Source of the DNA: Takakia lepidozioides
Lineage: Eukaryota; Plantae; Bryophyta
NCBI GenBank assembly: GCA_030704615.1
Contig: CM060733.1
Span: 57,412,001-57,476,000, forward strand
Direction: 5' to 3'
Length of the DNA stretch: 64,000 nt
Positions 30,024 through 63,850 of the stretch are shown in pieces. How positions within the stretch are numbered: position 1 is the first letter of the stretch; every line of letters begins with the position of its first letter. Below the pieces are notes generated by a model, which was given only the letters and a program-made list of their open reading frames with translations, ran no database searches and was not told the origin of the DNA. The translations under genes were made by a program, and so were the position numbers.

Positions 30024-30230
30024 TTTCACATACGGGGGAGCTGGGGATGGATGGTAGTTGTGTGAGAGGTTGTCAGGAGGCTTGAAGTAGAGGTGGGATC
30101 GCAGGTTTGTGGTAGGATTCGAGAGTTGGTTTCGCATACGGGAGCTGGGTGCATGGTGGTTTGAGTGAGAGGTTGTTAGGAGGCTTCAGGAAGAGGTGGG
30201 ATCGCAGGTTTGTGGGATTCGAGAGTAGGC
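30024..30230 (+). repeat. ~105-bp tandem duplication upstream of the PME start, probably in a 5'UTR intron
   Basis: CATACGGG.AGCTGGG...GTGAGAGGTTGT.AGGAGGCTT...AGAGGTGGGATCGCAGGTTTGTGG...GATTCGAGAGT occurs twice, followed by an acceptor-like TGTGCAG ending at 30276. Confidence 0.8.
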
Positions 30231-30284
30231 GTGTCCACAGCACGGGTTTGTTTTTTATGTTTGATTCCTTGTGCAGGTTGTTCG

Positions 30285-32839
30285 ATGGGAGAAAAATGTC
30301 GGGGGCGACCCTGCCTGTGGGTTCTGGTGGCCTTCGTGGCATGGATGGGGAGCACCTGCGCTGAGATCGTCTCCACCTACCCTGACGAGCCTGTCAATAC
30401 TGATTTCGACAACTGGTTGAGCTACATTGCGGAGACATCTGACCAAGACGACGTTCCTGCTTCGACGAGCAATGCACCAGCGTTGTCTGCTGGATCCTCA
30501 AGCGCAGTTTTAAGCGGTCATTTGCCCGGCAGCATCTCTTCCAAAGATGAAGATCATGAAGATCATGACGACAAAAAGCATAAGAAGAGTAAGAAGGGGA
30601 AAGGGACGAAGGGGAAAGGAACCAAGGGAAAAGGAACCAAGGGATCAGGAACCACGAGTCCGTTAACGGGCCTGCCCAAGCCTAAAGGTACTCCTAAGAA
30701 GATCACAGTTTCCAAACACGGCAAAGGGGATTTCAGGACGATCAATGCTGCGCTGGACTCCATTCCCGAACACAGCAAGTTTCGACACATTATTCACATC
30801 AAAGCTGGAACTTACGTGTATGTCCCGGCGCACACTTTCGATTAGCTGGTTGTTTTTTTTGTAGCTGTCTGAACCTTGGCGCTTTGAAGTGATTGCTAAC
30901 GACTTCAGTCGATTCTGAGATTGGCGTGGGGTGTTCATTGCAGGGAAAAAATCTTCATCAATACATCGAAGCCTTACATCACATTCAGGGGGGACGGTAT
31001 GTTCAACACCATCATTTCTTGGAACGACACTGCAGGTGATTTTGATGACCAAGACGTGCTTCTGAAGACCTACAAGAGCGCCACAGTAGGTGTCAATTCG
31101 GAGTTCTTCGTCGCCGAGAATATTCAATTCAGGGTATTGAATCAAGCCCGCAACTTTTTGTTCTGGACATCTGGTCAAACACTCCAGTAGATGTTTCATT
31201 GTTCTTATTGTTGAGTTCTCGTCCAGTTTTACACATGTTTCGTTTTACGGAGGTGGGCCGATTCTGTATGATAATGCCAAGTGGTTTTGTCAGCCCATTC
31301 TGCCACTCAAGATTACGCAATGGTGCTGTAGATCGCTGAGAGTTTGCTTCTAAACAGCGTGCACAATGCTCCTCTCCATGTTGTAGTTCTGTAAGCTTGC
31401 ATGATGTGTAAGTCGTCTTGCCTTGAACTTCGTTTTTTTTATACGCATTATGCAGGAGTAACCTCTAACCTCAAGAGTTGACTTGTGCAGAATACCGCAC
31501 CATCACCACCTCCAGGTGCAGTACTGAGGCAAGCCGTTGCCTTAAGAATAACTGCTGACAGGGCAGCATTTTACAATTCCTCCTTTTTCGGTTTCCAGGA
31601 TACTCTGTACGATCACAGAGGCCGCCATTACTTTGAGAACTGCTTCGTTCAGGGCTCTATCGATTTCATCTTCGGCAATGGCCGCTCCCTATACAGAGTA
31701 TGCACCACTTCCCCCATCTACTGCTTGCAGACCAAGCAGTTCTCGTTTTCTCTACACGGTTCCTCCTGACATTATTTTCCGCCTCGCTACAGATTCTAGT
31801 AAACTGCCATTCCTTCCTGATTTTAAGTTCTGTAGAATTTTTTCCTTTGTTTGAATCTTCAAAGCAGCTTCCATGGCGATCTGCGTGACTGCACTGTCCA
31901 TTTTGGGACCATTAGCGTTGGCCGCGTGGTGGTCCCCTCACCACGCGGTCCGTTGGACCGAAGAGATATCCTTCAATCCCAAACGCAACGTAACGCTGGT
32001 ACGGAGACTAATCGCCAGCTGGGAAAGGGCCAACTGGCATCCCTCGTCTGACCGGCTTTTTCCCGTAACCAATCACCGGGACGGGACTGTCCTCTTGGGA
32101 CATTTCACCCCTTATTGCCGGTTCTCCCGGTGGCACCAGCACCTTCGTCGTATCGTAGTCGACCCTGTTCCCGTTGTGATTTTGTGACTGATGATGTTGT
32201 CTCTCCGATTACAGGGATGCAAGCTGCACGCTGTGGCGGATACCTTCGGTTCACTGACTGCACAGAAGAAGAACGAATCTCGCATGGACACTGGTTTTTC
32301 TTTCGTGGATTGCTCTGTTTTTGGAACTGGTATTATTTATTTGGGCCGTGCTTGGGGTAACTTTTCTCGCACAGTGTACTCATATACCTGGATGGACAAC
32401 ATTATCTACCCTCCTGGCTGGTCAGACTTCGGATTTCCCGACCGTGATCAGTAAGTACTTAGAACTCTTTTGTAGATATGAGCTGTGATCTGTGGCCAGA
32501 AATTCCTTTCTGTTTTTGTCATGTGCCGATGAGTTTGGTTGTTCTAGTGCACTTGAGTTTCTGCAGTTCGTCCTGTGCATTCTCTTTGCTGCTCTACACC
32601 CGGATTACTTCTTATTTCTTTTTGCACCTGGAATCGTCCTGACACGGTCTTTGGTGGTGTGGAGCAGAAAGGTATTTTATGCCCAATATCACTGCACCGG
32701 TCCTGGCGCTAGCACTGTTCAACGAGTCCCATTTGCACGCCAATTGACTGCAGTGCAAGCTAAACCCTTTTTATCTGTGAACTTCATCAATGGCAAAAGC
32801 TGGTTGACACATTACATTAAGACGCCCAAGTTCACGTGA
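30285..32839 (+). CDS. Pectin methylesterase (CE8), type II without PMEI pro-domain (445 aa, 5 exons)
   Basis: Exons 30285-30817, 30944-31133, 31491-31697, 32215-32450, 32668-32839. Signal peptide; motifs [55 protein letters not shown]. Confidence 0.95.
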
Positions 32840-35780: not shown

Positions 35781-38222
35781 TGTCACGGACATAGTCCAGA
35801 GGAACTTACCAGGAGTAAATACCAGAAATTATCAAGTTACCATGTTACCGAAAAGTATCGTGATTTATCATGATCTACCATGATTTACTATTAATTATCA
35901 TTAGTTATCAAGTTACCGAGAATTTACCAAATTACCGAGAGTAACTTGAAAAACTGCTCAGGAAGCTTTCTTTGGTTGAAACTTCTCCATCAAGAAACCT
36001 TCATTGGGGAAGCTTTTTAGGGAACTTCCTAGTAGCCAGTATATATAGGAGACGAGACTGGACACTCTTCAGTCTCGCCAACACAAGTTCAAGCTATTTT
36101 TGTTTCCAGTTCCAGTACTTCAGTCCAGCTTCTAGTACTCTAGTTCAGTTTCCAGTATCTGGTACCCCAGTCCAGTTTGCAACATTCCAGTATTCGAGTC
36201 GAGTTCCAGTATCTTGTACTCTTGTCCATTGTTATAAATATCATCTTGATTCATGTTTATCCATCATGCATTCAGCCACGCCGACCTTGACTTCTTGTCT
36301 CGTCTTGTACCTCTAGTCTGATATCTTGTTTGTGTTCAGTCATGTTCTCGTCCTTGACAGTTTGGTGAGACTAAAGTTTGTTCCTTAGTTAGTTAAGATG
36401 GAAGGCACATTTGCGGAAATGGTCGCCACATTGCAGAATCTTCAGCTCCAAATGCAAGAACTTCGTATCTCTACCGCCCAATTACAAGCTGATCAGTCTC
36501 AAGATCTTGGCAACGCTCTCCACAATTTGCAACAACAAATTTCAGAGTTAAAGGAGTCGAACAATGGATCTTCAACCATACGAGTCCCTACTGGAACAGC
36601 TCCTACTGCAACGGTTCATCTTCAACAGATTACGAGAGAACCAAAGATCAACACGTCCGAGAAATTTGATGGGACGAGATCAAGATTTCGCGGTTTTGTT
36701 CAACAAGTACGATTATTCCTACGACTACATCCACAACGTTATCCCAATGAAGGTATTCAAATAGGATTCATGGGCACCCTTCTATCAGGCACTGCCCTAT
36801 CTTGGTTTGCACCACTATTAAAAATAAATTCGCATTTACTTTACAATTTTGAAGCGTTCATGTCCGAGTTCACTGCAACGTTTGGGGAAAATGATAAAGA
36901 GAGAGTTGCAGAGACAAAGATGCGAGATCTTCGACAGGGAGCACGCTTCCGTTTATACTACCGAATTTCGACAACTTGCTTGCGACCTCGACTGGAATGA
37001 GAAGAGCCTCATTAGTCAGTTTCAATGTGGGCTAAAAGAGGATGTAAAAGATTATTGCTAACAATGTCAAACGTGAGCACGCTGAGTGAATTCATCACCC
37101 AAGTCATTGCATGCGATTATCGTTTGTTTGAAAGACGTCAAGAGAAACGATTTGAATGGTCGACGACGCATCATGCCGCTGCTAATACGACATCAAACAC
37201 AACGATCCATCAGACATTCGGTAGTGATCATATGCAGATTGATGTTGTCCGATTCAAGCCGTTGACGCCACAAGAAAAACAAAGACGGCGCTCGAATGAA
37301 TTATGCTTCTATTGCGGAGAAGAAGATCACATAACATTAAACTACCCCAACAAGAGAAGATTCAAAGCTCGGGGCGCACTCAACTGTTCCATTCGAGGAG
37401 GTCGGAAAACGAAGATATCCAGTCACAGTAGGGACCATGCGGCTAAACACCACAAATTCATCACCAAAAAAATGTCTATTTCTACTTTCAGACACTACAC
37501 CTTGCTTCACAGTTCCGGTAAAAATCAGAGTGCAAAATCGAGATATCTCTGTAAAAGCACTTTTGGACTCAGGGGCTTAAACATGTTTTATTGACAAAAA
37601 CTTTGCGAAGCAACACAATTTAACGCTCGTAAAAAAGAAACTTTTGGCCCCCGTTGAAGTCATCAATGGACGACCGTTAATATCAGGAGATGTTGACCAT
37701 GAAACTCGACCACTTGAAGTGAAACTTAATATCAAACATCATAAATTATTCTCAATGTCAACCAGTTTTCAACGAATCATGTGATCATTGGACTTCTCTA
37801 GTTCGTAATTCACAATCCTGACATCGACTAGCGATCGCGAAAAAGTTCTGCAAGACAAAAATGTAGAAATATCAAATATATTCAACCCTGTTCCTTTGGA
37901 GCTAGAAGTTTCATGAGAGCTACTAAAAAAAATTTGACATCTACACTTTATGCGACTCTAATCAAGACCACAACAGACAAAGGCACTTCAACATTACCCA
38001 CTCAATATCAAGATTTCAAGGATGTCTTCAAGAAAAAAAATGCAGACATATTGCCAGAACATCGACCTTATGACTGTGCAATTAAGTTACAAGAAGGGCC
38101 CAAACACCATTCGGTCCAATCTATAACTTATCCCAGATGGAGTTGGCTGCATCACATGAATATATTGAGGAAAATTTGTCGAAGCACTTCATCCGACATT
38201 CAAAATCACCTGCGGGGGCGCC
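35781..38222 (+). mobile_element. Ty3/Gypsy chromovirus (Tf1/sushi/Tcn1-like) 5' half: LTR, gag, protease, start of RT; decayed
   Basis: LTR 35781-36359 (TGTCA...TGACA). Gag from 36398 with EPKI..EKFDG.RS.FRGF, LLSGTALSWF, MQID, LCFYCG..DH; protease ALLDSGA region ~37555; LP.QYQDF.DVF...[12 protein letters not shown] and SKSPAGA at the RT start. Stops and frameshifts present. Confidence 0.92.
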
Positions 38223-39810
38223 TGTCAAGGACGAGAACATGACTGAAATACAAACAAGATATCAGACTAGAGGTACAAGACTAGACAAGAAGTCAAGATC
38301 AGCGTGACCGAATGCATGATGGATAAACATGAATCAATGTGATATTTATAACAATGGACAAGAGTACAAGATACTGGAACTCGACTTGAATACTGAAATG
38401 TTGGAAACTGGACTGGAGTACAGATACTGGAAACTGCACTAGAGTACTAGAAGCTGGACTTGAGTATTATGACTAGAAACAAGAGTAGCTTGAACTTGTG
38501 TTGGCGAGACTGAAGAATGTCCAGTCTCGCCTCCTATATATATTGGCTATTAAAAAATTTCCTAAGAAACTTCCCTAATGGAGGTTTCTTGATGGGGAAG
38601 TTTATTCCAAATGAAGCTTCCTGAGCAGTTTCCCAAGTTGCTCTCGGTAATTTGGTAAACTCCCGATAACTTGGTAACTAATGGCAATTAATGGTAACTA
38701 ATGATAAATCATGGTAGATCATAGTAAATTATGGTAACTTGGCGGTAACATGATAATTTGGTAACTTCTAGTATTTACTTCTGGTATTTACTTCTGGTAA
38801 ATTCTTCAAAACTATGTCCGTGACATCACCCCCTCCTCTAACGTCGAGTTCCTCGAGGAGCGGTAAAATCTTGGACTTGCTTAGAGTTGGAGAAAATCCA
38901 AAATCCGGCGAATGGTACTTTCCAAGTATTCGGCTCTTCATTCTTGACTCAAATGATTTCTACGTCCCTGCAACCATTGATAGTGTCCAACACCTTGAAC
39001 TTGGGACTACGCAGTGATTTGAGCATTCTGATTTTCGAAGCTGCCTTCAACGTCTCGAGAGCATCGGCATGATGTTGAAGGTCGTGAAAGTCGGAACAGT
39101 TGATCTGGTAGTTGGGCAAGCGACAGCTCCAATGTATCTGGTTCATGTGACTCCATGCTGCCAATACAAGATACAAGAGTGCTGGAAATGTAGCTATATA
39201 TATTGATGTGTGGTGATCTTTCCTCCTTAGCGTGTATCAAATACACTGAATATGGAGTCTTCACCTTGAAGCTAACTTGGCTAACATCATCATTGTAACG
39301 TCTTATTGACGTGTAGCTCGGGGCCTAGCTGGATATCGTTGATGAAACTCTTGGACTTTGTCAAATGCATTGGCGAGGTTGGATGAAGGTTCCCACCTTC
39401 GTTCGCTGATATCGTAGCTTTTTCAATGTACAAAATATTCAAGACGTTTATATTTTATGCGAGAGTCTAGGACTTCGTTGATTTCATACTCGATTTCCTG
39501 ATTGACTTCGATTAGTGGGGGTGGTACGAAGACTCTCCTTGGAATATTCGATGGATGATACAACTCCAATAATAAAACATGAAAGACTGGATGGATGCGC
39601 ATACTTCGTGGGAGTTCAAGCCGAAAACTGACCAGATTTATTTGTCGAATAATTTTGAATGGTCTTAGGTGTTGATAATCCAACTTCTTTGATGGTTGCG
39701 AGGTTTGTATGTCCCGTCGAAGAAGCCACACACGATCTCCGATCTTAAACTGGGGTTGGAGTTGGCGATGTTGATCTGCATACTCCTTGTATTGTTTTTG
39801 AGCTTCTGCT
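38223..39810 (-). mobile_element. Same-family chromovirus 3' half in opposite orientation: integrase C-terminus, chromodomain, PPT and 3' LTR
   Basis: Inverted LTR copy at 38223-38825; PPT AGAGGAGGGGGTGA adjacent on minus; FKIGDRVWL...KKLDYQHLRPFKI...IHPVFHV..L (GPY/F region) and chromodomain EYEINEVLDSR...LEYFVH*K.YD...WEP. Confidence 0.9.
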
Positions 39811-43154: not shown

Positions 43155-43870
43155 TTCCAGGATGACATCTGATACAATTCCAGCTTTGACAATGTCACTA
43201 TGGATCTCTTCCCTCTTTTCCAGAGCTCCCAGGCTTGCACACGCATTGCAAACACAAACAAACGCGATGTGGTTGGGCTTCACCCCTTCACGCAACATTC
43301 GCTCATAGGTCTCCTAAGCATTCCTACCACACCTACGCTTGGTAAATCCTGCCAACATAATATTCCACGTGATCAAAGATCATTGAGGCATTCTGTTGAA
43401 CACTTGGTGAGCATCCATGATGCTCCCGCACTTAACACATGTTGACAAGGGTGTTGAGTAGAAAAACATTTGGTGTGAATCCACTTTGGATAATGTGAGT
43501 GTGCACCTGCTTTCCAGCTTCCAGACCATCCATCTTGATGCACTTAAGCAACAGACAGACATATCTGAATCTGCTGAAATGCCTCCTTGGTTTAGAGTCT
43601 GTAGAGCCTCTGTCAGTCTGTGTGCCGCACAAAGTATCTTCACATGCCCAGATGTGCCAGAAGAGGCATTGTGGACTCCCTCTCTTGATCCTCTAATTTC
43701 AACAGTTGTGGTCATGGTTGAGGTGCCTGATTTTATCAACTGTGCCACTGCAGCTGCTGCCTTTAGTTGACCATCTACACATGCAGGTTTCTTGTAGCTA
43801 CTGATCCACCTGAAATCAAGGTAATCTGGAGCTTGAAGTCCAGCCCTCTTGGATGAATCTGGACCCACAC
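43155..43870 (-). pseudogene. PLS-class PPR pseudogene, copy 2 (tandem duplicate of the N-terminal part)
   Basis: ~43160-43995 duplicates ~41700-42545. GKQVHTHIIQSGFTPNVFLLNTLVNM, KCGSIMDAHQVFNRM and MLREGVKPNHIAFVCVCNACASLGALEK lie in different frames. A third partial copy is at ~44290-44490. Confidence 0.85.
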
Positions 43871-53979: not shown

Positions 53980-56900
53980 ATGGCGCTGGGGATTCAGCCT
54001 TGTGGTGCGTTCTATGCGCAGTGGCAGCAGGCATTGGACACTAGCAAGTTGGGCACTCCGCGCTCGGTGGTGGGCTGTCTCCCTGCATCTGCGCGGGGTT
54101 GGGCTACTGTCTTGTGCGAGGGCGAGGGCACAAGTCAGCCTAGAAAGGGTTTTGGGACCGAAGTGAAGAAAGGGGGAAAGCAGGGTTCTTCTAAGGGGCC
54201 CGTGACAAAGAAGATCGGGAACAAAGGAGATAAACGTGCGATTTCTGTGAGGGAGGGGTCCAAGCAGCTGCAAAATGTTCTAAAGGCTGTGGAGAAAGTA
54301 CTCCCTTTTACCCTGTGATTCCTATTTCAGTTCCATTATTGTACGCCTCTCTCGTGTCTTACGTTCTAGTGCTGTGAGAGTGTTGGCGACGATCATAGAA
54401 CCTTCTTTGTTGAATGGGTTTTGCAGGAGAGCGCAGATGAGCGGTCCAAGGGCCTGGGCATAGATCCAGAGGCAGCAGCCAAGTGCAAGGTGGATTTTGT
54501 GCGGGTACAATCATGGGGTTCCGAGGGAGGCGGTGAACAAGAACTGGATAATCTCAGATTGAAGAGCTTTAGCCCAGCCTTCAGCTCTGAAGAAACTGAT
54601 GCCCCTTTTTATGAACAGCTTGTCCGTCGCCTACAGCTTCTGGATTTCAAGGTATTTTGGCTAATTTTTTTGTGGCTGTGGCTGTCTAACTTACGGTGTA
54701 TGCACGTCATGATTTCATCTTACAACGATTGATCATCCTAATGTTGAGACACTAGAAGCGAACGTGACGCAGGGGATAATGGGTGGACGGACAGGGCGAG
54801 TTATCGGTGGCTCAAGCGCGACCATTGCCACCTTTTGAACGGTGGAGCTTTAGTGAGGACCGATATTTGCAGTTCTTGCAGGATCAGGTCTCTACTATTT
54901 TTCTTGCTCTATGTTCCCTGCTGTGTATATTATCTATTTTGCATTGCATAATCTGATATACAATTTGTGTAAGTGACCAGTTCGAGTAGGTGAAGTCCCC
55001 GGAAGTTAAGAGTATGTGGTCTTTGTGTTGTAGCATGCAGTCTACGAAGCTCTGAGGGAGGTCATTGCAGCTGTCAAGAAATCAATTATCAATGATGGTG
55101 CACCTTCCACAGACCACAGCCAGGTCCCTGATAGCAGAGCAGCCACGGCCATTGCCGTGTTCGATACCCCTCTTGGCCTTGACCGCTCTGAGGTCAGCCA
55201 CATTCCTTTTGCATCCTGCTCTCTGTCTCTGTTTTGTATATGTGCGTCCCCTTTGAGTATGGCTGATGCCTATACACCTTTGTAGAAATGCAATGCAGAC
55301 TCTGATGGAAGTGTGAGTGTGTAGGTTAGGCAGGGTCTTTATTGCAAGGGAACTGACCAGGTACCTGGGATCATGCGTCCACAGGTCTCAGAACTTGTTA
55401 CGGTCAGTTGGTGGTGTAATTGGGAGCTAGCGTGTCAATGGATGAAATGCTTTATGTCCATACAAAAGACTAGGTGTCAGGAAGATGGTGATAGGAGTGA
55501 AAATCTTGACCTTCATCCCGGTCAATTCTGCTGGCAATGACTCTGACTGTGTTGTTGCACCTGCAGGAGCTTATGGCCGACATTTCTTCCTTGTCCAGGG
55601 CAGCCACTGGACGCAGTGGCACTCCTAAGGATTTGCCAGTGCCCACTATTCAAACAACTGCATATGTGAAGGTACGTCTATATCTAGGGTTCTGAAGTTC
55701 CAGGGGTGGCCTAGGTAGGTAATTGATAGATCAAACACATGGTGTGGTTGTGGCAGTGATTTTGACCTGGTCATGGACTCTTGTGGATGGATAGGTAAAG
55801 TTGATGAAGGTGGGGCATTGCAGTACCTAAGACAAATTGGGCGAGGTGCTGCACAAGAGAAGGATGGGAGTAATGCATGCCTACGACTTATGGCACACAT
55901 TTTTGCGATTCATGTTGCTCATCTCACCACAGGTTAGTAGTTTTTCTAGCATTCTTTCTTTATTCAATGCTTTATACGTAGCAAATTTTTTTCAACGTTG
56001 ATTTTTCAATTTCTTTCAGTTGCTGTTAGTTATGTGTTCTCATCTTCTTAAAAAATGTTGTGGTGGCCGAAGGGAGGTAGAGAATGTAGTAGAAAACATG
56101 ACAACATTATCTACCTCCCTTCTCCTTGGTGTGGCAAACATTCTGTTGTGTTGCAGAAAGTGTTGGAGTGGCCACAAATTGTACTCAATTATGGGATGGG
56201 GACTACAGGCTCCACCTGGGTGTGATGGCCTTGCTTCATTACAGTGATTGTTCGATAAAGCGAGGTAGATTGGGAGCTGGTTAGCCACAGCTGCATAAAA
56301 GTTAATGATTGGCCTGATTTCGCAGGTATGAGGGTCGGGGCAAAAGCAGTGGAGTGCATGTCCATATTGGCAGAGTCCAAGGCTGTGAGGTTCTATCGCG
56401 ACTACCCGCCGGTATTACTTCCACTCCCTTGTTTTTATTTTGAAAATATCAACACATTTTAAGCAGGTGCCTTTGATTTACTTGTCCCCTGCTCAATAAC
56501 AAGGAACCACTGGACTACAGTAGACAAGGTCAGGCTGAGCCTGAGCTCCAGGGTTGGTTGGGTTTGCAGCAAGCACGAGATCCACTCCGCGTGTTCATTG
56601 CAGCAGTTAATAGTGCAGGCTCTTCAATTGCCCTGGCAGATGACCATGAACAGGTAACTCTGGAACCACTACAATGAAGTAAGGGGGTAGCCGGCTCTGA
56701 TTGAAAACCAATCTGCCCTACAATTTGAAAAACATAGTTGTGGTTTGGGACCATTTTGTGAATGACTTAAGGCAGGTTCTCCTGCTAGCTGCTTCATGTT
56801 CCTCTTTGTTGGTCCCAACTGTAGCTTCTTGTATGGCGAACATATCTTTATCACAACAATCTTATGAATTCATCAGCATGATTAGGGGGATGGCATCTAC

Positions 56901-57124
56901 CACCTGCTTTGGAAATCAAGCCGAGCACACACTGCGCCCAAGCCTGTACTGCACTCCTCTTTTCCTGAGTGAACGTGTTGCATTAGTGACATCAGCTAGC
57001 CAATTGTTAGTGACAACAACATGTGGAATCACAGGTGATGCAGGAGCTTCCTAAGGCGATGCAGAAGACCAGCTTGCTTTTTTCTGTGCTTGCTGTGGAG
57101 GAACAATCTCACATGACTACATAG
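53980..57124 (+). CDS. Divergent heme oxygenase-like protein lacking the proximal His, probably plastid-targeted (422 aa, 9 exons)
   Basis: Exons 53980-54297, 54427-54651, 54795-54887, 55034-55192, 55567-55671, 55824-55932, 56326-56411, 56570-56653, 57035-57124; all GT-AG and in frame. Colinear with plant HO1 motifs: RYLQFLQDQHAVYEAL ~ GYLRFLVDSKLVYDTL; GLDRSEELMADI ~ GLERAEKLSTDL; AYVKYLRQI ~ TYSQYLKEL; AHIFAIHVAHLTTGMRVGAK ~ [20 protein letters not shown]; VRFY ~ LEFY; MQELPKAMQKT ~ LEETEKSFKYS. Confidence 0.82.
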
Positions 57125-57868: not shown

Positions 57869-60800
57869 TAAAGGAGTAAGTTGCATTAACTTACTTAATA
57901 TGCATCAGCACTGGCAACGTGGGAGACACGGTGTCGAGTTTATGTTATCCACTGAATTCAAATCTAGCCAGCTAGCTTGCATTGTAGTCCACTGAATTCT
58001 AAAATCCCAATGATACTAGTTCCCGCTTGATGGACATAATCTGGCTGAATAGGCTACTTGCATTCTATCTTCTCTATCCATCGTGTAAGGGGGAGTGAGC
58101 AATTTCAGAATAGCTGGAATGATAGGCTGTGTGTTTCCCAGCTTAACTAAGTTGGTGTGTACCTTTTTGGCCTTTTGCAATTTACAAGCATTGTTACTTG
58201 CAATTCGTGTGTGCAGTCTTGTGTCACAGGTCACTCTTTGTTATTAGTATGGTTTTCTTCAGCATGAGCGTCAGGAGAAAGCTTATATTCCTTTAGGTTA
58301 TGGGCCCACGAAGATGTCCTTAAATTGCGTCGTCATTTTTATTTTATTTTGTTTTAGTGCAGCCTGAAGTACGTTTGTGTCAGCATGGCGGACGTTACTG
58401 AAGATCTGGGAAATGGCGAGAACTATGGAAAGAGTTGATGGGGGCGGGTAGTGGACGGGACAGAGCCCAAACCAACAAGCGCTGGTGCTGATCAGTTAGC
58501 TTAGGTCAAGCGAGACAGTCAGGCGATCAGCCTTCTTTGTCAAGTCATAGACAAAAAGTATTTGAAGAACGTTATCAGTTGCGTGACCTCAAATGCAATT
58601 TGGGCGAAGCTGATATTAATTCAAGAGCAAGACGCCAACGAGAGCATTCATGTCTTGCAGCAGAGGTTTTACAAAGTACAGCTAGGGGAGGGAGAGGGGA
58701 TCGCTTCTTTTCTCAACAACCTAGACATGGTCGTTAGTCAGTTGGCTAGTAGGGGAAATAAGACGTTCACTAAGGCTGCCATCATCGCTAAGATCATGGC
58801 CAACCTTCCATCAGGGTACGATAGCTTTTTGTCATCGTGGGATATCACCCCGAATGCATCCAAGACTATGGAGAATTTGACCTTGCATTTGCTGCAGCAA
58901 GAAGCTCGGATCAAGAGTCGTTAGGATGCTAGTACAGACAATGTGACGGCTTTCGTGGCTACGAAATCAGAAGGAGGTTCCAAGTCTGGACAGTTCGGCG
59001 GTGGCGAGAAGCAGAAGCAAACTTTAATGTATGAGCAACGGCAGGCTAGACGTAAGAGGATAAAAGACCGGAAGAAGACAACCGCGTGTCATAAGCGCGG
59101 GCGAAAGGGGCATTGGGTGCGCGAATACACAGACGACGACCCAAAGGGCTCCAAGGCTAGTGAGAAAAAGGAGTCCAATAGCAGAGGCGCTAAGGAAGAC
59201 GACGAGAAAAGGAAATCTAGCTTTGTCTCATACAAGGCGTTCATGGCAAGTTTTTCCAACTTGTCCAACGGCCACTGGTATGCCGATAGCGGGTGCACAC
59301 AGCACATGACGGACCAAAGATCTTGGTTCACGACGTTTAGAGAGCTTTCTCAGCAACAGCCGATTCAGGGGATCGGAGGAATAAAGATGTCGGCTAAGGG
59401 AGTTGGCGATATCTTGATCAGAATAAGAATTGGTGATGGCGGTGTCACTAGCATGCTTACTGAGGTATTGTACGTGCCTGATTTGGGAAGAAATCTTTCT
59501 CGTGTTACAAAGCAGCGCAGAAAAATATTTTCACGCTCCACATGAAGGATGGGTGCTAGATGATACAAGACGGAGAGGTGGTCATGACTGGCATTTTGAG
59601 GAACTGTATGTATCAGCTTGAATTCGAAGCTGTCGCCAGAGACGATGAGACAAGTCAATAGTTGGCAATTGTGGCAAGATCATTCGGAGTCCAGACAAAC
59701 AGAGGCGGTACCCAGACGCTTGAGGTATGGCATGAGAGGCTTGCTCATGTTAATCATAGTATGATTAAGAAGATGGCGTCTACTGGGATGGTGGACGGCT
59801 TGATTCTTGAGAACAAGAATGAGGAGTTTTGTGTTGGCTGTGCATGCGGCAAAAATCATAGAACGGTGTTCCCTTGGAATGAACATCGCGATAGAGCCAA
59901 TAACCCGAGCGAATTAGTGCACACGGACCTCTGTGGGCCGATGCACACACCAAGCATTGGAGGAGCTTTGTATTTTGCTCTCTTTAAGGATGATACTACA
60001 GGGTATCGGGTCATTGAGACGATCAAGACAAAATCCGAGACCCTGGCTTGTTTCAAGCGCTTTGTCGGTCAGATGAAGCAAGAAACTGGCTTTGGCATCA
60101 AGATAGTCCGCAGCGACAGGGGGATAGAGTATACAAATTAGAAATTCCGTGAGTTTCTCGAGATTAGCAACATCAGACAGGAACTCACTGCAGTGTATAC
60201 TCCTGAACAGAACAGTGCTAGCGAGCGGGACAACCGTACGATCATGGAGGCTGCACGTAGCATGATTCATGCGAGTAACCTGCAAATGAAGTTTTGGGGA
60301 GAAGCCGTAAATATTGCAACATACGTTTGAACAGAACCGGCACGAGAACCCTGGAAGGAATTACTCCATACAAGGCATGGTTCCGTGTCAAGCCATCAGT
60401 TGGACACATCAGAGTATTCGGATCAGATGCTTACATACATGTACCCAAGGAGCTGACGCACAAACTTCTTCCGAAGAGCAAGAAGGAGATTCTCTTGGGC
60501 TACTCAGACACGAGTAAGGCATATAGGCTATGGGATGTGGCTGACGGCAAGGTCGTCGAAAGTAGAGATGTGCTTTTTGATGAGAGACACGTGCCAGACC
60601 TGATCTAATGGAGAAGAAAGATCTGTCCAAGATCTTCACAGGATCTTCTTCGATGTTGGGGAGATAGCACCAATTACTCCAGTTCAACAGGATGAGATGG
60701 ATAGTCCAGTCATTCCTAGCAACCCTAACAGTGGCTCAAACGAGGAGTGAGTAACTCATAGCAGTGTCGATGGATTGGCCGACCACTCTGCTGATGACAA

Positions 60801-62945: not shown

Positions 62946-63546
62946 GGAAGTAATTAAACATATCTAGAAGACTAAGAGTCTTGAAGGCCAAAGGTTTAGA
63001 AGTCTAAGAGACTATCTTGTTTAACTCACCTTTGGAAGGTGAATGGCTAGAAGGTGGATGGTCACCATAGTGGAAGTGGAAGTGACCAAGTAGGATTTCC
63101 TAGAGACCTTCTTGTACAAGCTCGGGGGTGAAGCCACTAGTCTAAGTGTAAAAGTATGATGGTGGCTTCTATAGTTGGGAGGAGGTTAGCTATTTCATGA
63201 GCATGAGCGGCATGAGCAGAGTAGTAAGACAATCGGTTTTCATGAGCAGAAGTACAAATTTCGAAAATAAAAAACAATAAAAACATTAATTTAATGCAAT
63301 GTGTCAGGAAAAACAAATATATTATTCGGCCCCTTGAAGGGAAAATTGTAGTTTTGACAATTGTGCTCATGATATTTCATCTTCCGCTCATGCCAATTCC
63401 CAGCGACATGTGCAAATATGGCGCCGAATTTCGCGGTAATAGGGTCCGTAACCTGAAAAAACGGCGACGTATTTCGCGGTAATAGGTCTCTTTGGCGAAA
63501 AATGGTGCCGAATTCCGCGGCTATAGGTCCCCTCATGACAGGTAAT

Positions 63547-63850
63547 TCGGCGCCATTTTTCCAATGCATGTTCGGACTTAGCCAGTTTTCGGCGCAAAAT
63601 AGGGAAATTCGGCGCCATTTTTCCAGACACTGTACCAGTGCATGTTGGGACTTAGCCAGTTTTTGGCCCAAAAAAGAGAAATTCGGCGCCATTTTCCAGA
63701 CACGATACCAGTGCATGTTGGGACTTAGCCAGTTTTTGGCCCAAAAAAGAGAAATTTGGCGCCATTTTCCCAGACATAGGTACCAGTGCATGTTGGGACT
63801 TAGCCAGTTTTCGGCCCCAAAAAGAGAAATTCGGCGCCATTTTTCCAGAA
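63547..63850. repeat. ~60-bp tandem minisatellite, about 5 copies
   Basis: Unit GGCGCCATTTT.CCAGACA...TACCAGTGCATGTTGGGACTTAGCCAGTTTT.GGCCC.AAAAAGAGAAATT. It is preceded by shorter ATTTCGCGGTAATAGG subrepeats at 63420-63530. Confidence 0.9.

Follow-up and report, generated by a model that had tools for sequence, protein, structure and literature searches.

A nine-exon Takakia gene represents an old and apparently undescribed green-lineage family of heme-oxygenase-fold proteins that probably lack catalytic activity

Our analysis of a 64,000-nucleotide window of the Takakia lepidozioides genome (contig CM060733.1) revealed an intact gene on the forward strand (positions 53980–57124) whose product, according to the model of an ortholog and a family profile, has the fold of plant heme oxygenase 1 (HO1), and which is very probably non-catalytic. 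The family to which it belongs is best read as a further pseudo-heme-oxygenase (pseudo-HO) lineage beside Arabidopsis HO2 (AtHO2) and Plasmodium PfHO. As to descent, the best explanation traces the gene, as sole ortholog, to an ancient duplicate of the plant-type HO (HO1/HMOX1), one that would be older than the split between chlorophytes and streptophytes. Pseudo-HOs are already known as a kind from AtHO2 and PfHO; the lineage described here is a distinct and old one, apparently undescribed.

Reading of the interval from 52.5 to 58.5 kb yielded nine exons, from an ATG at 53980 to a TAG at 57122–57124, with GT-AG borders at all eight introns and a single open frame of 422 amino acids, as the first-pass annotation of this DNA had described. 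Twelve of the acceptor combinations tested leave the frame open, and one of them, with exon 3 starting at 54795, exon 6 at 55824 and exon 8 at 56570, gives exactly 422 residues. We chose this set because exons 2–9, aligned one by one, tile the Physcomitrium ortholog end to end with neither gap nor overlap; longer variants of exon 8 aligned more poorly to that ortholog and were discarded. On the Physcomitrium protein (P0028), exons 1–9 correspond to residues 1–104, 105–177, 178–208, 209–261, 262–295, 296–332, 334–361, 362–389 and 390–414. The eight intron positions are identical in the Physcomitrium and Marchantia orthologs, and the purine-rich acceptor preceding exon 3 has a similar counterpart in the Physcomitrium gene. 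The Physcomitrium ortholog was found on 227 contigs, and the four that we read are assemblies of about 2 kb with an uninterrupted frame, i.e., spliced mRNA, which agree with the Takakia gene exon by exon. We consider the nine-exon, 422-codon gene confirmed, its junctions resting on those of the orthologs. Features of the gene are collected in Table 1.

Table 1. Features of the Takakia gene (window coordinates)
Feature	Position	Strand	Description
Exon 1	53980..54297	+	aa 1-106; about aa 1-46 probably a chloroplast transit peptide, then KGFG motif and Lys-rich segment; targeting inferred
KGFG motif	54145-54156	+	aa 56-59; KGFG-like in 17/20 proteins checked
Exon 2	54427..54651	+	75 aa; carries the N-terminal motif specific to the family, then the proximal helix; 52/73 identical to Physcomitrium
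N-terminal motif outside the HO domain	54460..54576	+	V, W and L invariant; G is Cys here (54484-54486); two short strands modelled at low confidence
Proximal helix without His	54607..54645	+	Asp (54643-54645) at HY1 His86; Val (54622) at HY1 Arg79
Exon 3	54795..54887	+	31 aa; loop PLPPFERW, with Phe matching HY1 Val106 and an invariant Trp matching HY1 Trp109, then the beginning of helix 2; purine-rich acceptor
Exon 4	55034..55192	+	53 aa; last part of helix 2, then a variable insertion and a GLxR motif in common with HO1
Exon 5	55567..55671	+	35 aa; helix 3, then a variable insertion and the beginning of helix 4
Exon 6	55824..55932	+	109 nt; helix 4 and first half of distal helix; His (55920) at HY1 His206, Thr (55929) at HY1 Gly209, Phe at HY1 Tyr200
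Exon 7	56326..56411	+	86 nt; second half of distal helix; family-invariant Arg (56331, HY1 Met212), Tyr at HY1 Tyr230
Exon 8	56570..56653	+	28 aa; helix 6; Ile (56597) at propionate-binding HY1 Arg244
Exon 9	57035..57124	+	29 aa and TAG; C-terminal helix lining the pocket; 21/25 identical to Physcomitrium

Exons were aligned and searched singly or by way of relatives, and the joined frame served for counting codons and stops; single exons, too short as queries, gave no match in Pfam or the PDB. Summed over exons, identity reaches 66% with Physcomitrium and Ceratodon, 62% with Sphagnum and 51% with liverworts. Across exons 2–9, dN/dS against Physcomitrium, a check that had been called for at the outset, is approximately 0.14 with dS near saturation, and the codon comparison thus shows a gene under purifying selection. 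The high intron count noted at first pass does set the gene apart from HO1, but with eight introns it is a trait of the land-plant family rather than of this gene alone.

The protein begins with a variable, acid-poor leader, most likely a transit peptide that would direct import into the chloroplast stroma, followed by the KGFG motif and a Lys-rich stretch, both already noted at first pass. The 45 residues after KGFG contain 12 Lys or Arg in Takakia and 7–15 across the family, with no conservation of their sequence. Next comes a motif of about 40 residues upstream of the HO domain, with G, V, W and L invariant in the family, which a deeper AlphaFold model renders as two short strands at a pLDDT of about 55 and for which the ESM Atlas held no look-alike. 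The Takakia copy carries Cys (TGC) where all aligned relatives have Gly, which may be a change in the species, an allelic variant or an error of sequencing. Within the domain, intron 6 splits the distal helix (HLTT/GMRVG), and three variable insertions relative to HY1, the Arabidopsis HO1 (in exons 4, 5 and 6, where two had been counted before), are unconserved loops.

Elsewhere in the window, a fragmented Copia-type LTR retrotransposon with gag, Pol beta-barrel, pre-integrase and integrase pieces lies about 1.4 kb downstream of the gene (58562–60141), and a Ty3/gypsy gag remnant (36398–37594) is flanked by short tandem repeats (36105–36228 and 38355–38799). The start of a pectinesterase gene occupies 30210–30845, its domain preceded by a Lys/Gly-rich 15-bp repeat (30594–30654); tandem arrays of 43-bp and 73-bp units fill 63414–63849; and a reverse-strand open reading frame (43380–43868) ends in sequence that is PPR-like by eye and has no Pfam match.

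Three word-based searches gathered about 50 near-full-length relatives, and exon 6 alone as a query matched one hornwort and one Cryptomeria protein. The family ranges over chlorophytes, streptophyte algae, bryophytes, lycophytes, ferns and conifers. Land-plant members come from mosses (the Physcomitrium ortholog is LOC112282303), liverworts (Mp6g20090 in Marchantia), a hornwort, Selaginella, Diphasiastrum, ferns, Cryptomeria and Taxus, and algal members from Spirogloea, Mesotaenium, Mesostigma, Pyramimonas, Trebouxia, Coccomyxa, Myrmecia, Elliptochloris, Symbiochloris, Chlorella, Stichococcus, Botryococcus, Monoraphidium and Raphidocelis. In the family tree, which mirrors the species tree as expected of a single-copy ortholog, further sequences group with ferns, conifers, mosses or algae; Riccia species have two copies, neighbouring or duplicate. 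Word-based searches, one with a conifer query included, returned no family match from angiosperms, and the family has likely been lost in flowering plants; the same kind of search gave no match in Chlamydomonas or the Mamiellophyceae. A pattern-based search of bacterial and archaeal genomes and viral contigs, which reaches close relatives only, retrieved no family member. A separate search for viral plant-type HOs returned none. In the ESM Atlas, the highest-scoring feature match (0.86, a lead only) falls on a cluster of short HO-domain proteins from Nucleocytoviricota; viral HMOX1 of this kind, with altered pockets, has been described in a preprint (10.64898/2026.08.07.743453).

As the first-pass annotation had anticipated, the family already sits in databases as uncharacterised protein: its members are named "uncharacterized", "hypothetical" or, in UniRef, "heme oxygenase (biliverdin-producing)", the last a label that looks automatic. 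One member, P0044 from Adiantum nelumboides (560 aa), bears an additional PF24626/PF00385 (chromodomain) annotation and is probably a gene-model fusion with a retroelement. We found no description of the family in the literature, where subscription papers were thinly covered and a passing mention in some phylogeny is possible. A published count of a single HO gene in Marchantia (10.1101/2023.10.30.564862) evidently omits Mp6g20090.

The assignment to the HO fold, proposed earlier from the letters alone, was borne out by both profile and structure. Searched against the PDB, the family profile retrieved only 7EQH and 7CKA, the HO1 structures of Arabidopsis and soybean, with E values of about 1e-9 and an hhalign probability of 97.5. 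Two AlphaFold models of the Physcomitrium ortholog (pLDDT 84.8 and 84.3) matched Arabidopsis HY1 (7EQH) best, with Z scores of 21.9 and 22.1 and an rmsd of 2.6 A over 204 residues at 23% identity, followed by 7CKA (Z 21.3), PfHO (18.4–18.8) and animal and bacterial HOs (about 17–18); no di-iron or TenA relative scores above 14. In Pfam, Heme_oxygenase touched 12 of 35 members, none significantly (best E 7.7e-5). The structural alignment begins at model residue 49, equivalent to HY1 residue 71, in a register that agrees with the sequence alignment. Because local profile alignments begin only at Trp109, the register of the proximal helix rests on these two alignments; the Takakia helix contains no His anywhere, so the loss of the proximal His is independent of register.

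We examined descent with a canonical HO1 set obtained by a pattern scan (Arabidopsis HY1, two other land-plant transcripts and His-bearing algal-type genes from presumed lichen metagenomes), using cyanobacterial, cyanophage and other bacterial HOs as outgroups. In two maximum-likelihood trees, which have long stems and partial algal HO1 rows and were built without HO2, PfHO or red-algal HOs, the family forms one clade (support 98/99 and 99/99) outside an HO1 clade of algal and land-plant sequences (99/94 and 99/96). Since both clades appear to hold algal as well as land-plant members, the duplication would predate the chlorophyte/streptophyte split. HO1 introns, located after about residues 141, 217 and 252, coincide with none of the family's. 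The earlier proposal of a third plastid HO-fold lineage, neither HO1 nor HO2, is supported by this separate clade, the missing His and the lack of HO2 features, with HO2 itself absent from the trees.

Heme contacts of HY1 (PMC7948506, PMC9433822) were mapped onto 49 family members. At the position of the proximal ligand, His86, none of 48 sequences has His or Arg; Glu (33), Gln (9) and Asp (6) take its place, so that the Asp of Takakia (codon 54643), correctly called at first pass, is a minority residue in its own family. An acid occupies position 83 or 86 in 46/48. The propionate anchors are gone as well: Arg79 is replaced by Val, Ala, Cys or Gly in 48/48 (Val in Takakia) and Arg244 mostly by Ile, Val, Met or Leu (Ile in Takakia), with Arg in 3/49. 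Remodelling of the distal helix, likewise recognised before, extends throughout the family, in which the position of Gly209 is Thr, Ser or bulkier and Gly in no member (Takakia has Thr-Gly at Gly209–Gly210), Ala208 is Thr or Ser, and the nearby basic residue Arg215 is replaced by Ala in 86%. Tyr200 is Phe in all 30 streptophyte members, Takakia included. Retained from HO1 are Trp109 (49/49), Tyr116, Tyr230 and Gly210; His206 is kept in 30/30 streptophytes and 11/19 chlorophyte-side members, and the distal hydrogen-bond network of Tyr116, His206 and Tyr230 is present in Takakia and nearly all streptophyte members. New conserved pocket residues are Arg at Met212 (49/49), Phe at Val106 (98%) and Ala at Ser269 (98%), together with a near-invariant PLPPF loop. 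With contact residues lost and new ones near-invariant, the cleft is conserved in a new form, not decayed. Without a His ligand, anchors for the propionates and a distal kink, heme degradation is most likely impossible.

Two earlier ideas about metal binding fared less well. The family alignment contains no family-wide set of metal ligands, whether His/carboxylate or multi-His, and the only two partly conserved His columns (73% and 84%) are both inherited from HO1. In the His stretch of exon 6, thought to hold an extra His, the first and last are equivalent to HY1 His198 and His206, and the middle one, His in less than 60% of the family, was dropped as a candidate ligand. The near-invariant acids of the Physcomitrium protein (D207, D266 and E393) occur in HO1 too and are probably structural.

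What might an HO fold stripped of its heme ligand do in the plastid? Our tentative preference, held at a little under even chances, is for a non-catalytic binding or scaffold protein. Phe, Thr and Thr narrow the old heme cleft, and a bridge between the acid at the proximal position and the invariant Arg on the distal side probably spans it. Together with the N-terminal motif, the cleft would grip a peptide or partner protein; the conserved W/V motif has the look of a segment that folds only upon binding. The partner would probably belong to a plastid process dropped by flowering plants, plausibly at the tetrapyrrole/chlorophyll branch, to judge from paralogy and distribution. PfHO sets a precedent as an essential non-catalytic plastid protein of HO fold (PMC11634067), but the retained Trp109, Tyr116, Tyr230 and streptophyte His206 (30/30) fit a small-molecule site too, and porphyrin binding persists in AtHO2 and PfHO despite the missing His (PMC3488054). 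It is conceivable, if on balance rather unlikely, that the protein is instead a non-catalytic carrier or sensor of protoporphyrin IX, Mg-porphyrin, protochlorophyllide or a bilin, in which Glu, Asp or Gln, paired with the invariant Arg, would be the axial ligand, and that it may serve a step lost in angiosperms such as that of dark-operative protochlorophyllide reductase (DPOR). Pocket-lining columns are highly conserved, and Glu-Arg pairs, which ligate the Mg of chlorophyll in light-harvesting proteins, offer a precedent for such a site. Protoporphyrin IX is bound more tightly than heme by AtHO2 and PfHO (PMC3488054), and the family's overall range, from green algae to gymnosperms with no angiosperm match, equals that of chlL/N/B (PMC5443842), although flavodiiron proteins and other angiosperm losses match this distribution too. 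The loss of both propionate-anchoring Arg, the Phe for Tyr200 in all streptophyte members and the bulkier pocket lining speak against a tetrapyrrole ligand; of the tetrapyrrole or bilin binding suggested at first pass, the canonical mode has become less likely than was supposed there. We speculate further, giving the idea little credence as a whole, that the Fe-heme site gave way to a Glu/Arg site with Mg-tetrapyrroles as its ligand (or a subunit of the enzymes handling them), which would make this pseudo-HO an accessory factor, encoded in the nucleus, for a plastid pathway that angiosperms have lost, e.g., light-independent chlorophyll synthesis by DPOR.

The remaining explanations are harder to reconcile with the pocket and the tree. 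A plastid gene-expression factor, using the Lys-rich segment after the transit peptide to bind nucleoid or RNA, would mirror PfHO, the next structural match, which acts through its electropositive, plastid-DNA-binding N-terminus (PMC11634067). The Lys and Arg residues following KGFG throughout the family agree with such a role, yet the basic segment is unconserved and in many members weakly net-positive, the HO domain is neutral to acidic (net charge +3 to −17), and PfHO, at 17% identity, is an analogue rather than a shown ortholog; we regard this role as improbable. That the protein is still an enzyme, either an HO with a carboxylate axial ligand or one with a new non-heme metal site resembling the HO-like di-iron oxidases (HDOs), strikes us as very improbable: the distal hydrogen-bond residues are largely retained, several members carry the biliverdin-producing label and HDO folds match with Z scores of 10–14, but the proximal residue varies (Gln in nine), Gly209 in the distal helix and the pair of propionate Arg have gone, 8/19 chlorophyte-side members have another residue in place of His206, the near-invariant acids are those of HO1 with no conserved multi-His set beside them, and the Pfam HO score reaches significance in no member tested. 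There is hardly any chance that the gene is orthologous to HO2, or that it arose in Takakia as a recent degenerate copy or a pseudogene of HO1. The missing proximal His and an acidic stretch recall HO2, the trees were built without HO2, and the Takakia copy has Cys at an otherwise invariant Gly; against this, an acid and not Arg stands at the His position, there is no acidic spacer, identity to HY1 is 20–28% where AtHO2 is strongly similar to AtHO1 (PMC3488054), chlorophytes have members and the clade lies outside algal and land-plant HO1, no intron is held in common with HO1 genes, and dN/dS is low. We largely reject orthology with HO2, as judged in trees that do not contain it, and likewise a pseudogene or degenerate HO1 copy.

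Plant HO families are usually described as HO1 plus HO2. The lineage reported here would add an older one, kept by purifying selection since the green-plant ancestor; its apparent loss from angiosperms would explain why it escaped Arabidopsis genetics. The family points to an unrecognised conserved plastid function and indicates that a set of database entries named heme oxygenase is apparently mislabelled. The HO fold appears to have turned enzyme-dead in plastids once more, probably independently.

Among known systems, plant HO1 (HY1/GUN2; 7EQH, 7CKA) and algal HMOX1 provide the best structural and profile match, down to the short proximal helix of the plant type and the loop that follows it. 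W109, Y116, D122, G149–L150, R152, D159, Y230 and E265 are common to HO1 and the family, and plastid targeting is probable in both. Unlike HO1, the family lacks His86, Arg79, Arg244 and Gly209, adds the invariant pocket Arg and Phe, the N-terminal motif and the three insertions, shares none of its eight introns and is apparently missing from angiosperms. The seed-plant protein AtHO2, also a His-less HO1 paralog, plastid-located and catalytically inactive, is a functional analogue. The Glu/Asp-rich spacer of HO2 is located after the proximal helix; the corresponding loop in our family has 18–21 residues with 2–3 acids, compared with 19–28 residues in HO1. HO2, defined by Arg at the His position and by this acidic spacer (PMC9433822), lies near HO1, whereas the family has Glu, Asp or Gln there, diverges much further and goes back to the green-plant ancestor. 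Plasmodium PfHO (8ZLD) is likewise a plastid pseudo-HO without the His and the distal Gly and with a basic N-terminal extension, and it belongs to a class whose roles are largely unknown (PMC11634067). It differs in having Lys at the His position, a red-lineage plastid and a range limited to hematozoa (with chromerid relatives), and we regard it as an analogue by fold and residues. HO-like di-iron oxidases and TenA/PqqC proteins (UndA, CADD, SznF and HrmI) have the helical superfamily in common with our family (Z 9–14), but the match is far weaker than that to true HOs, and the family is without their conserved set of three His plus carboxylate.
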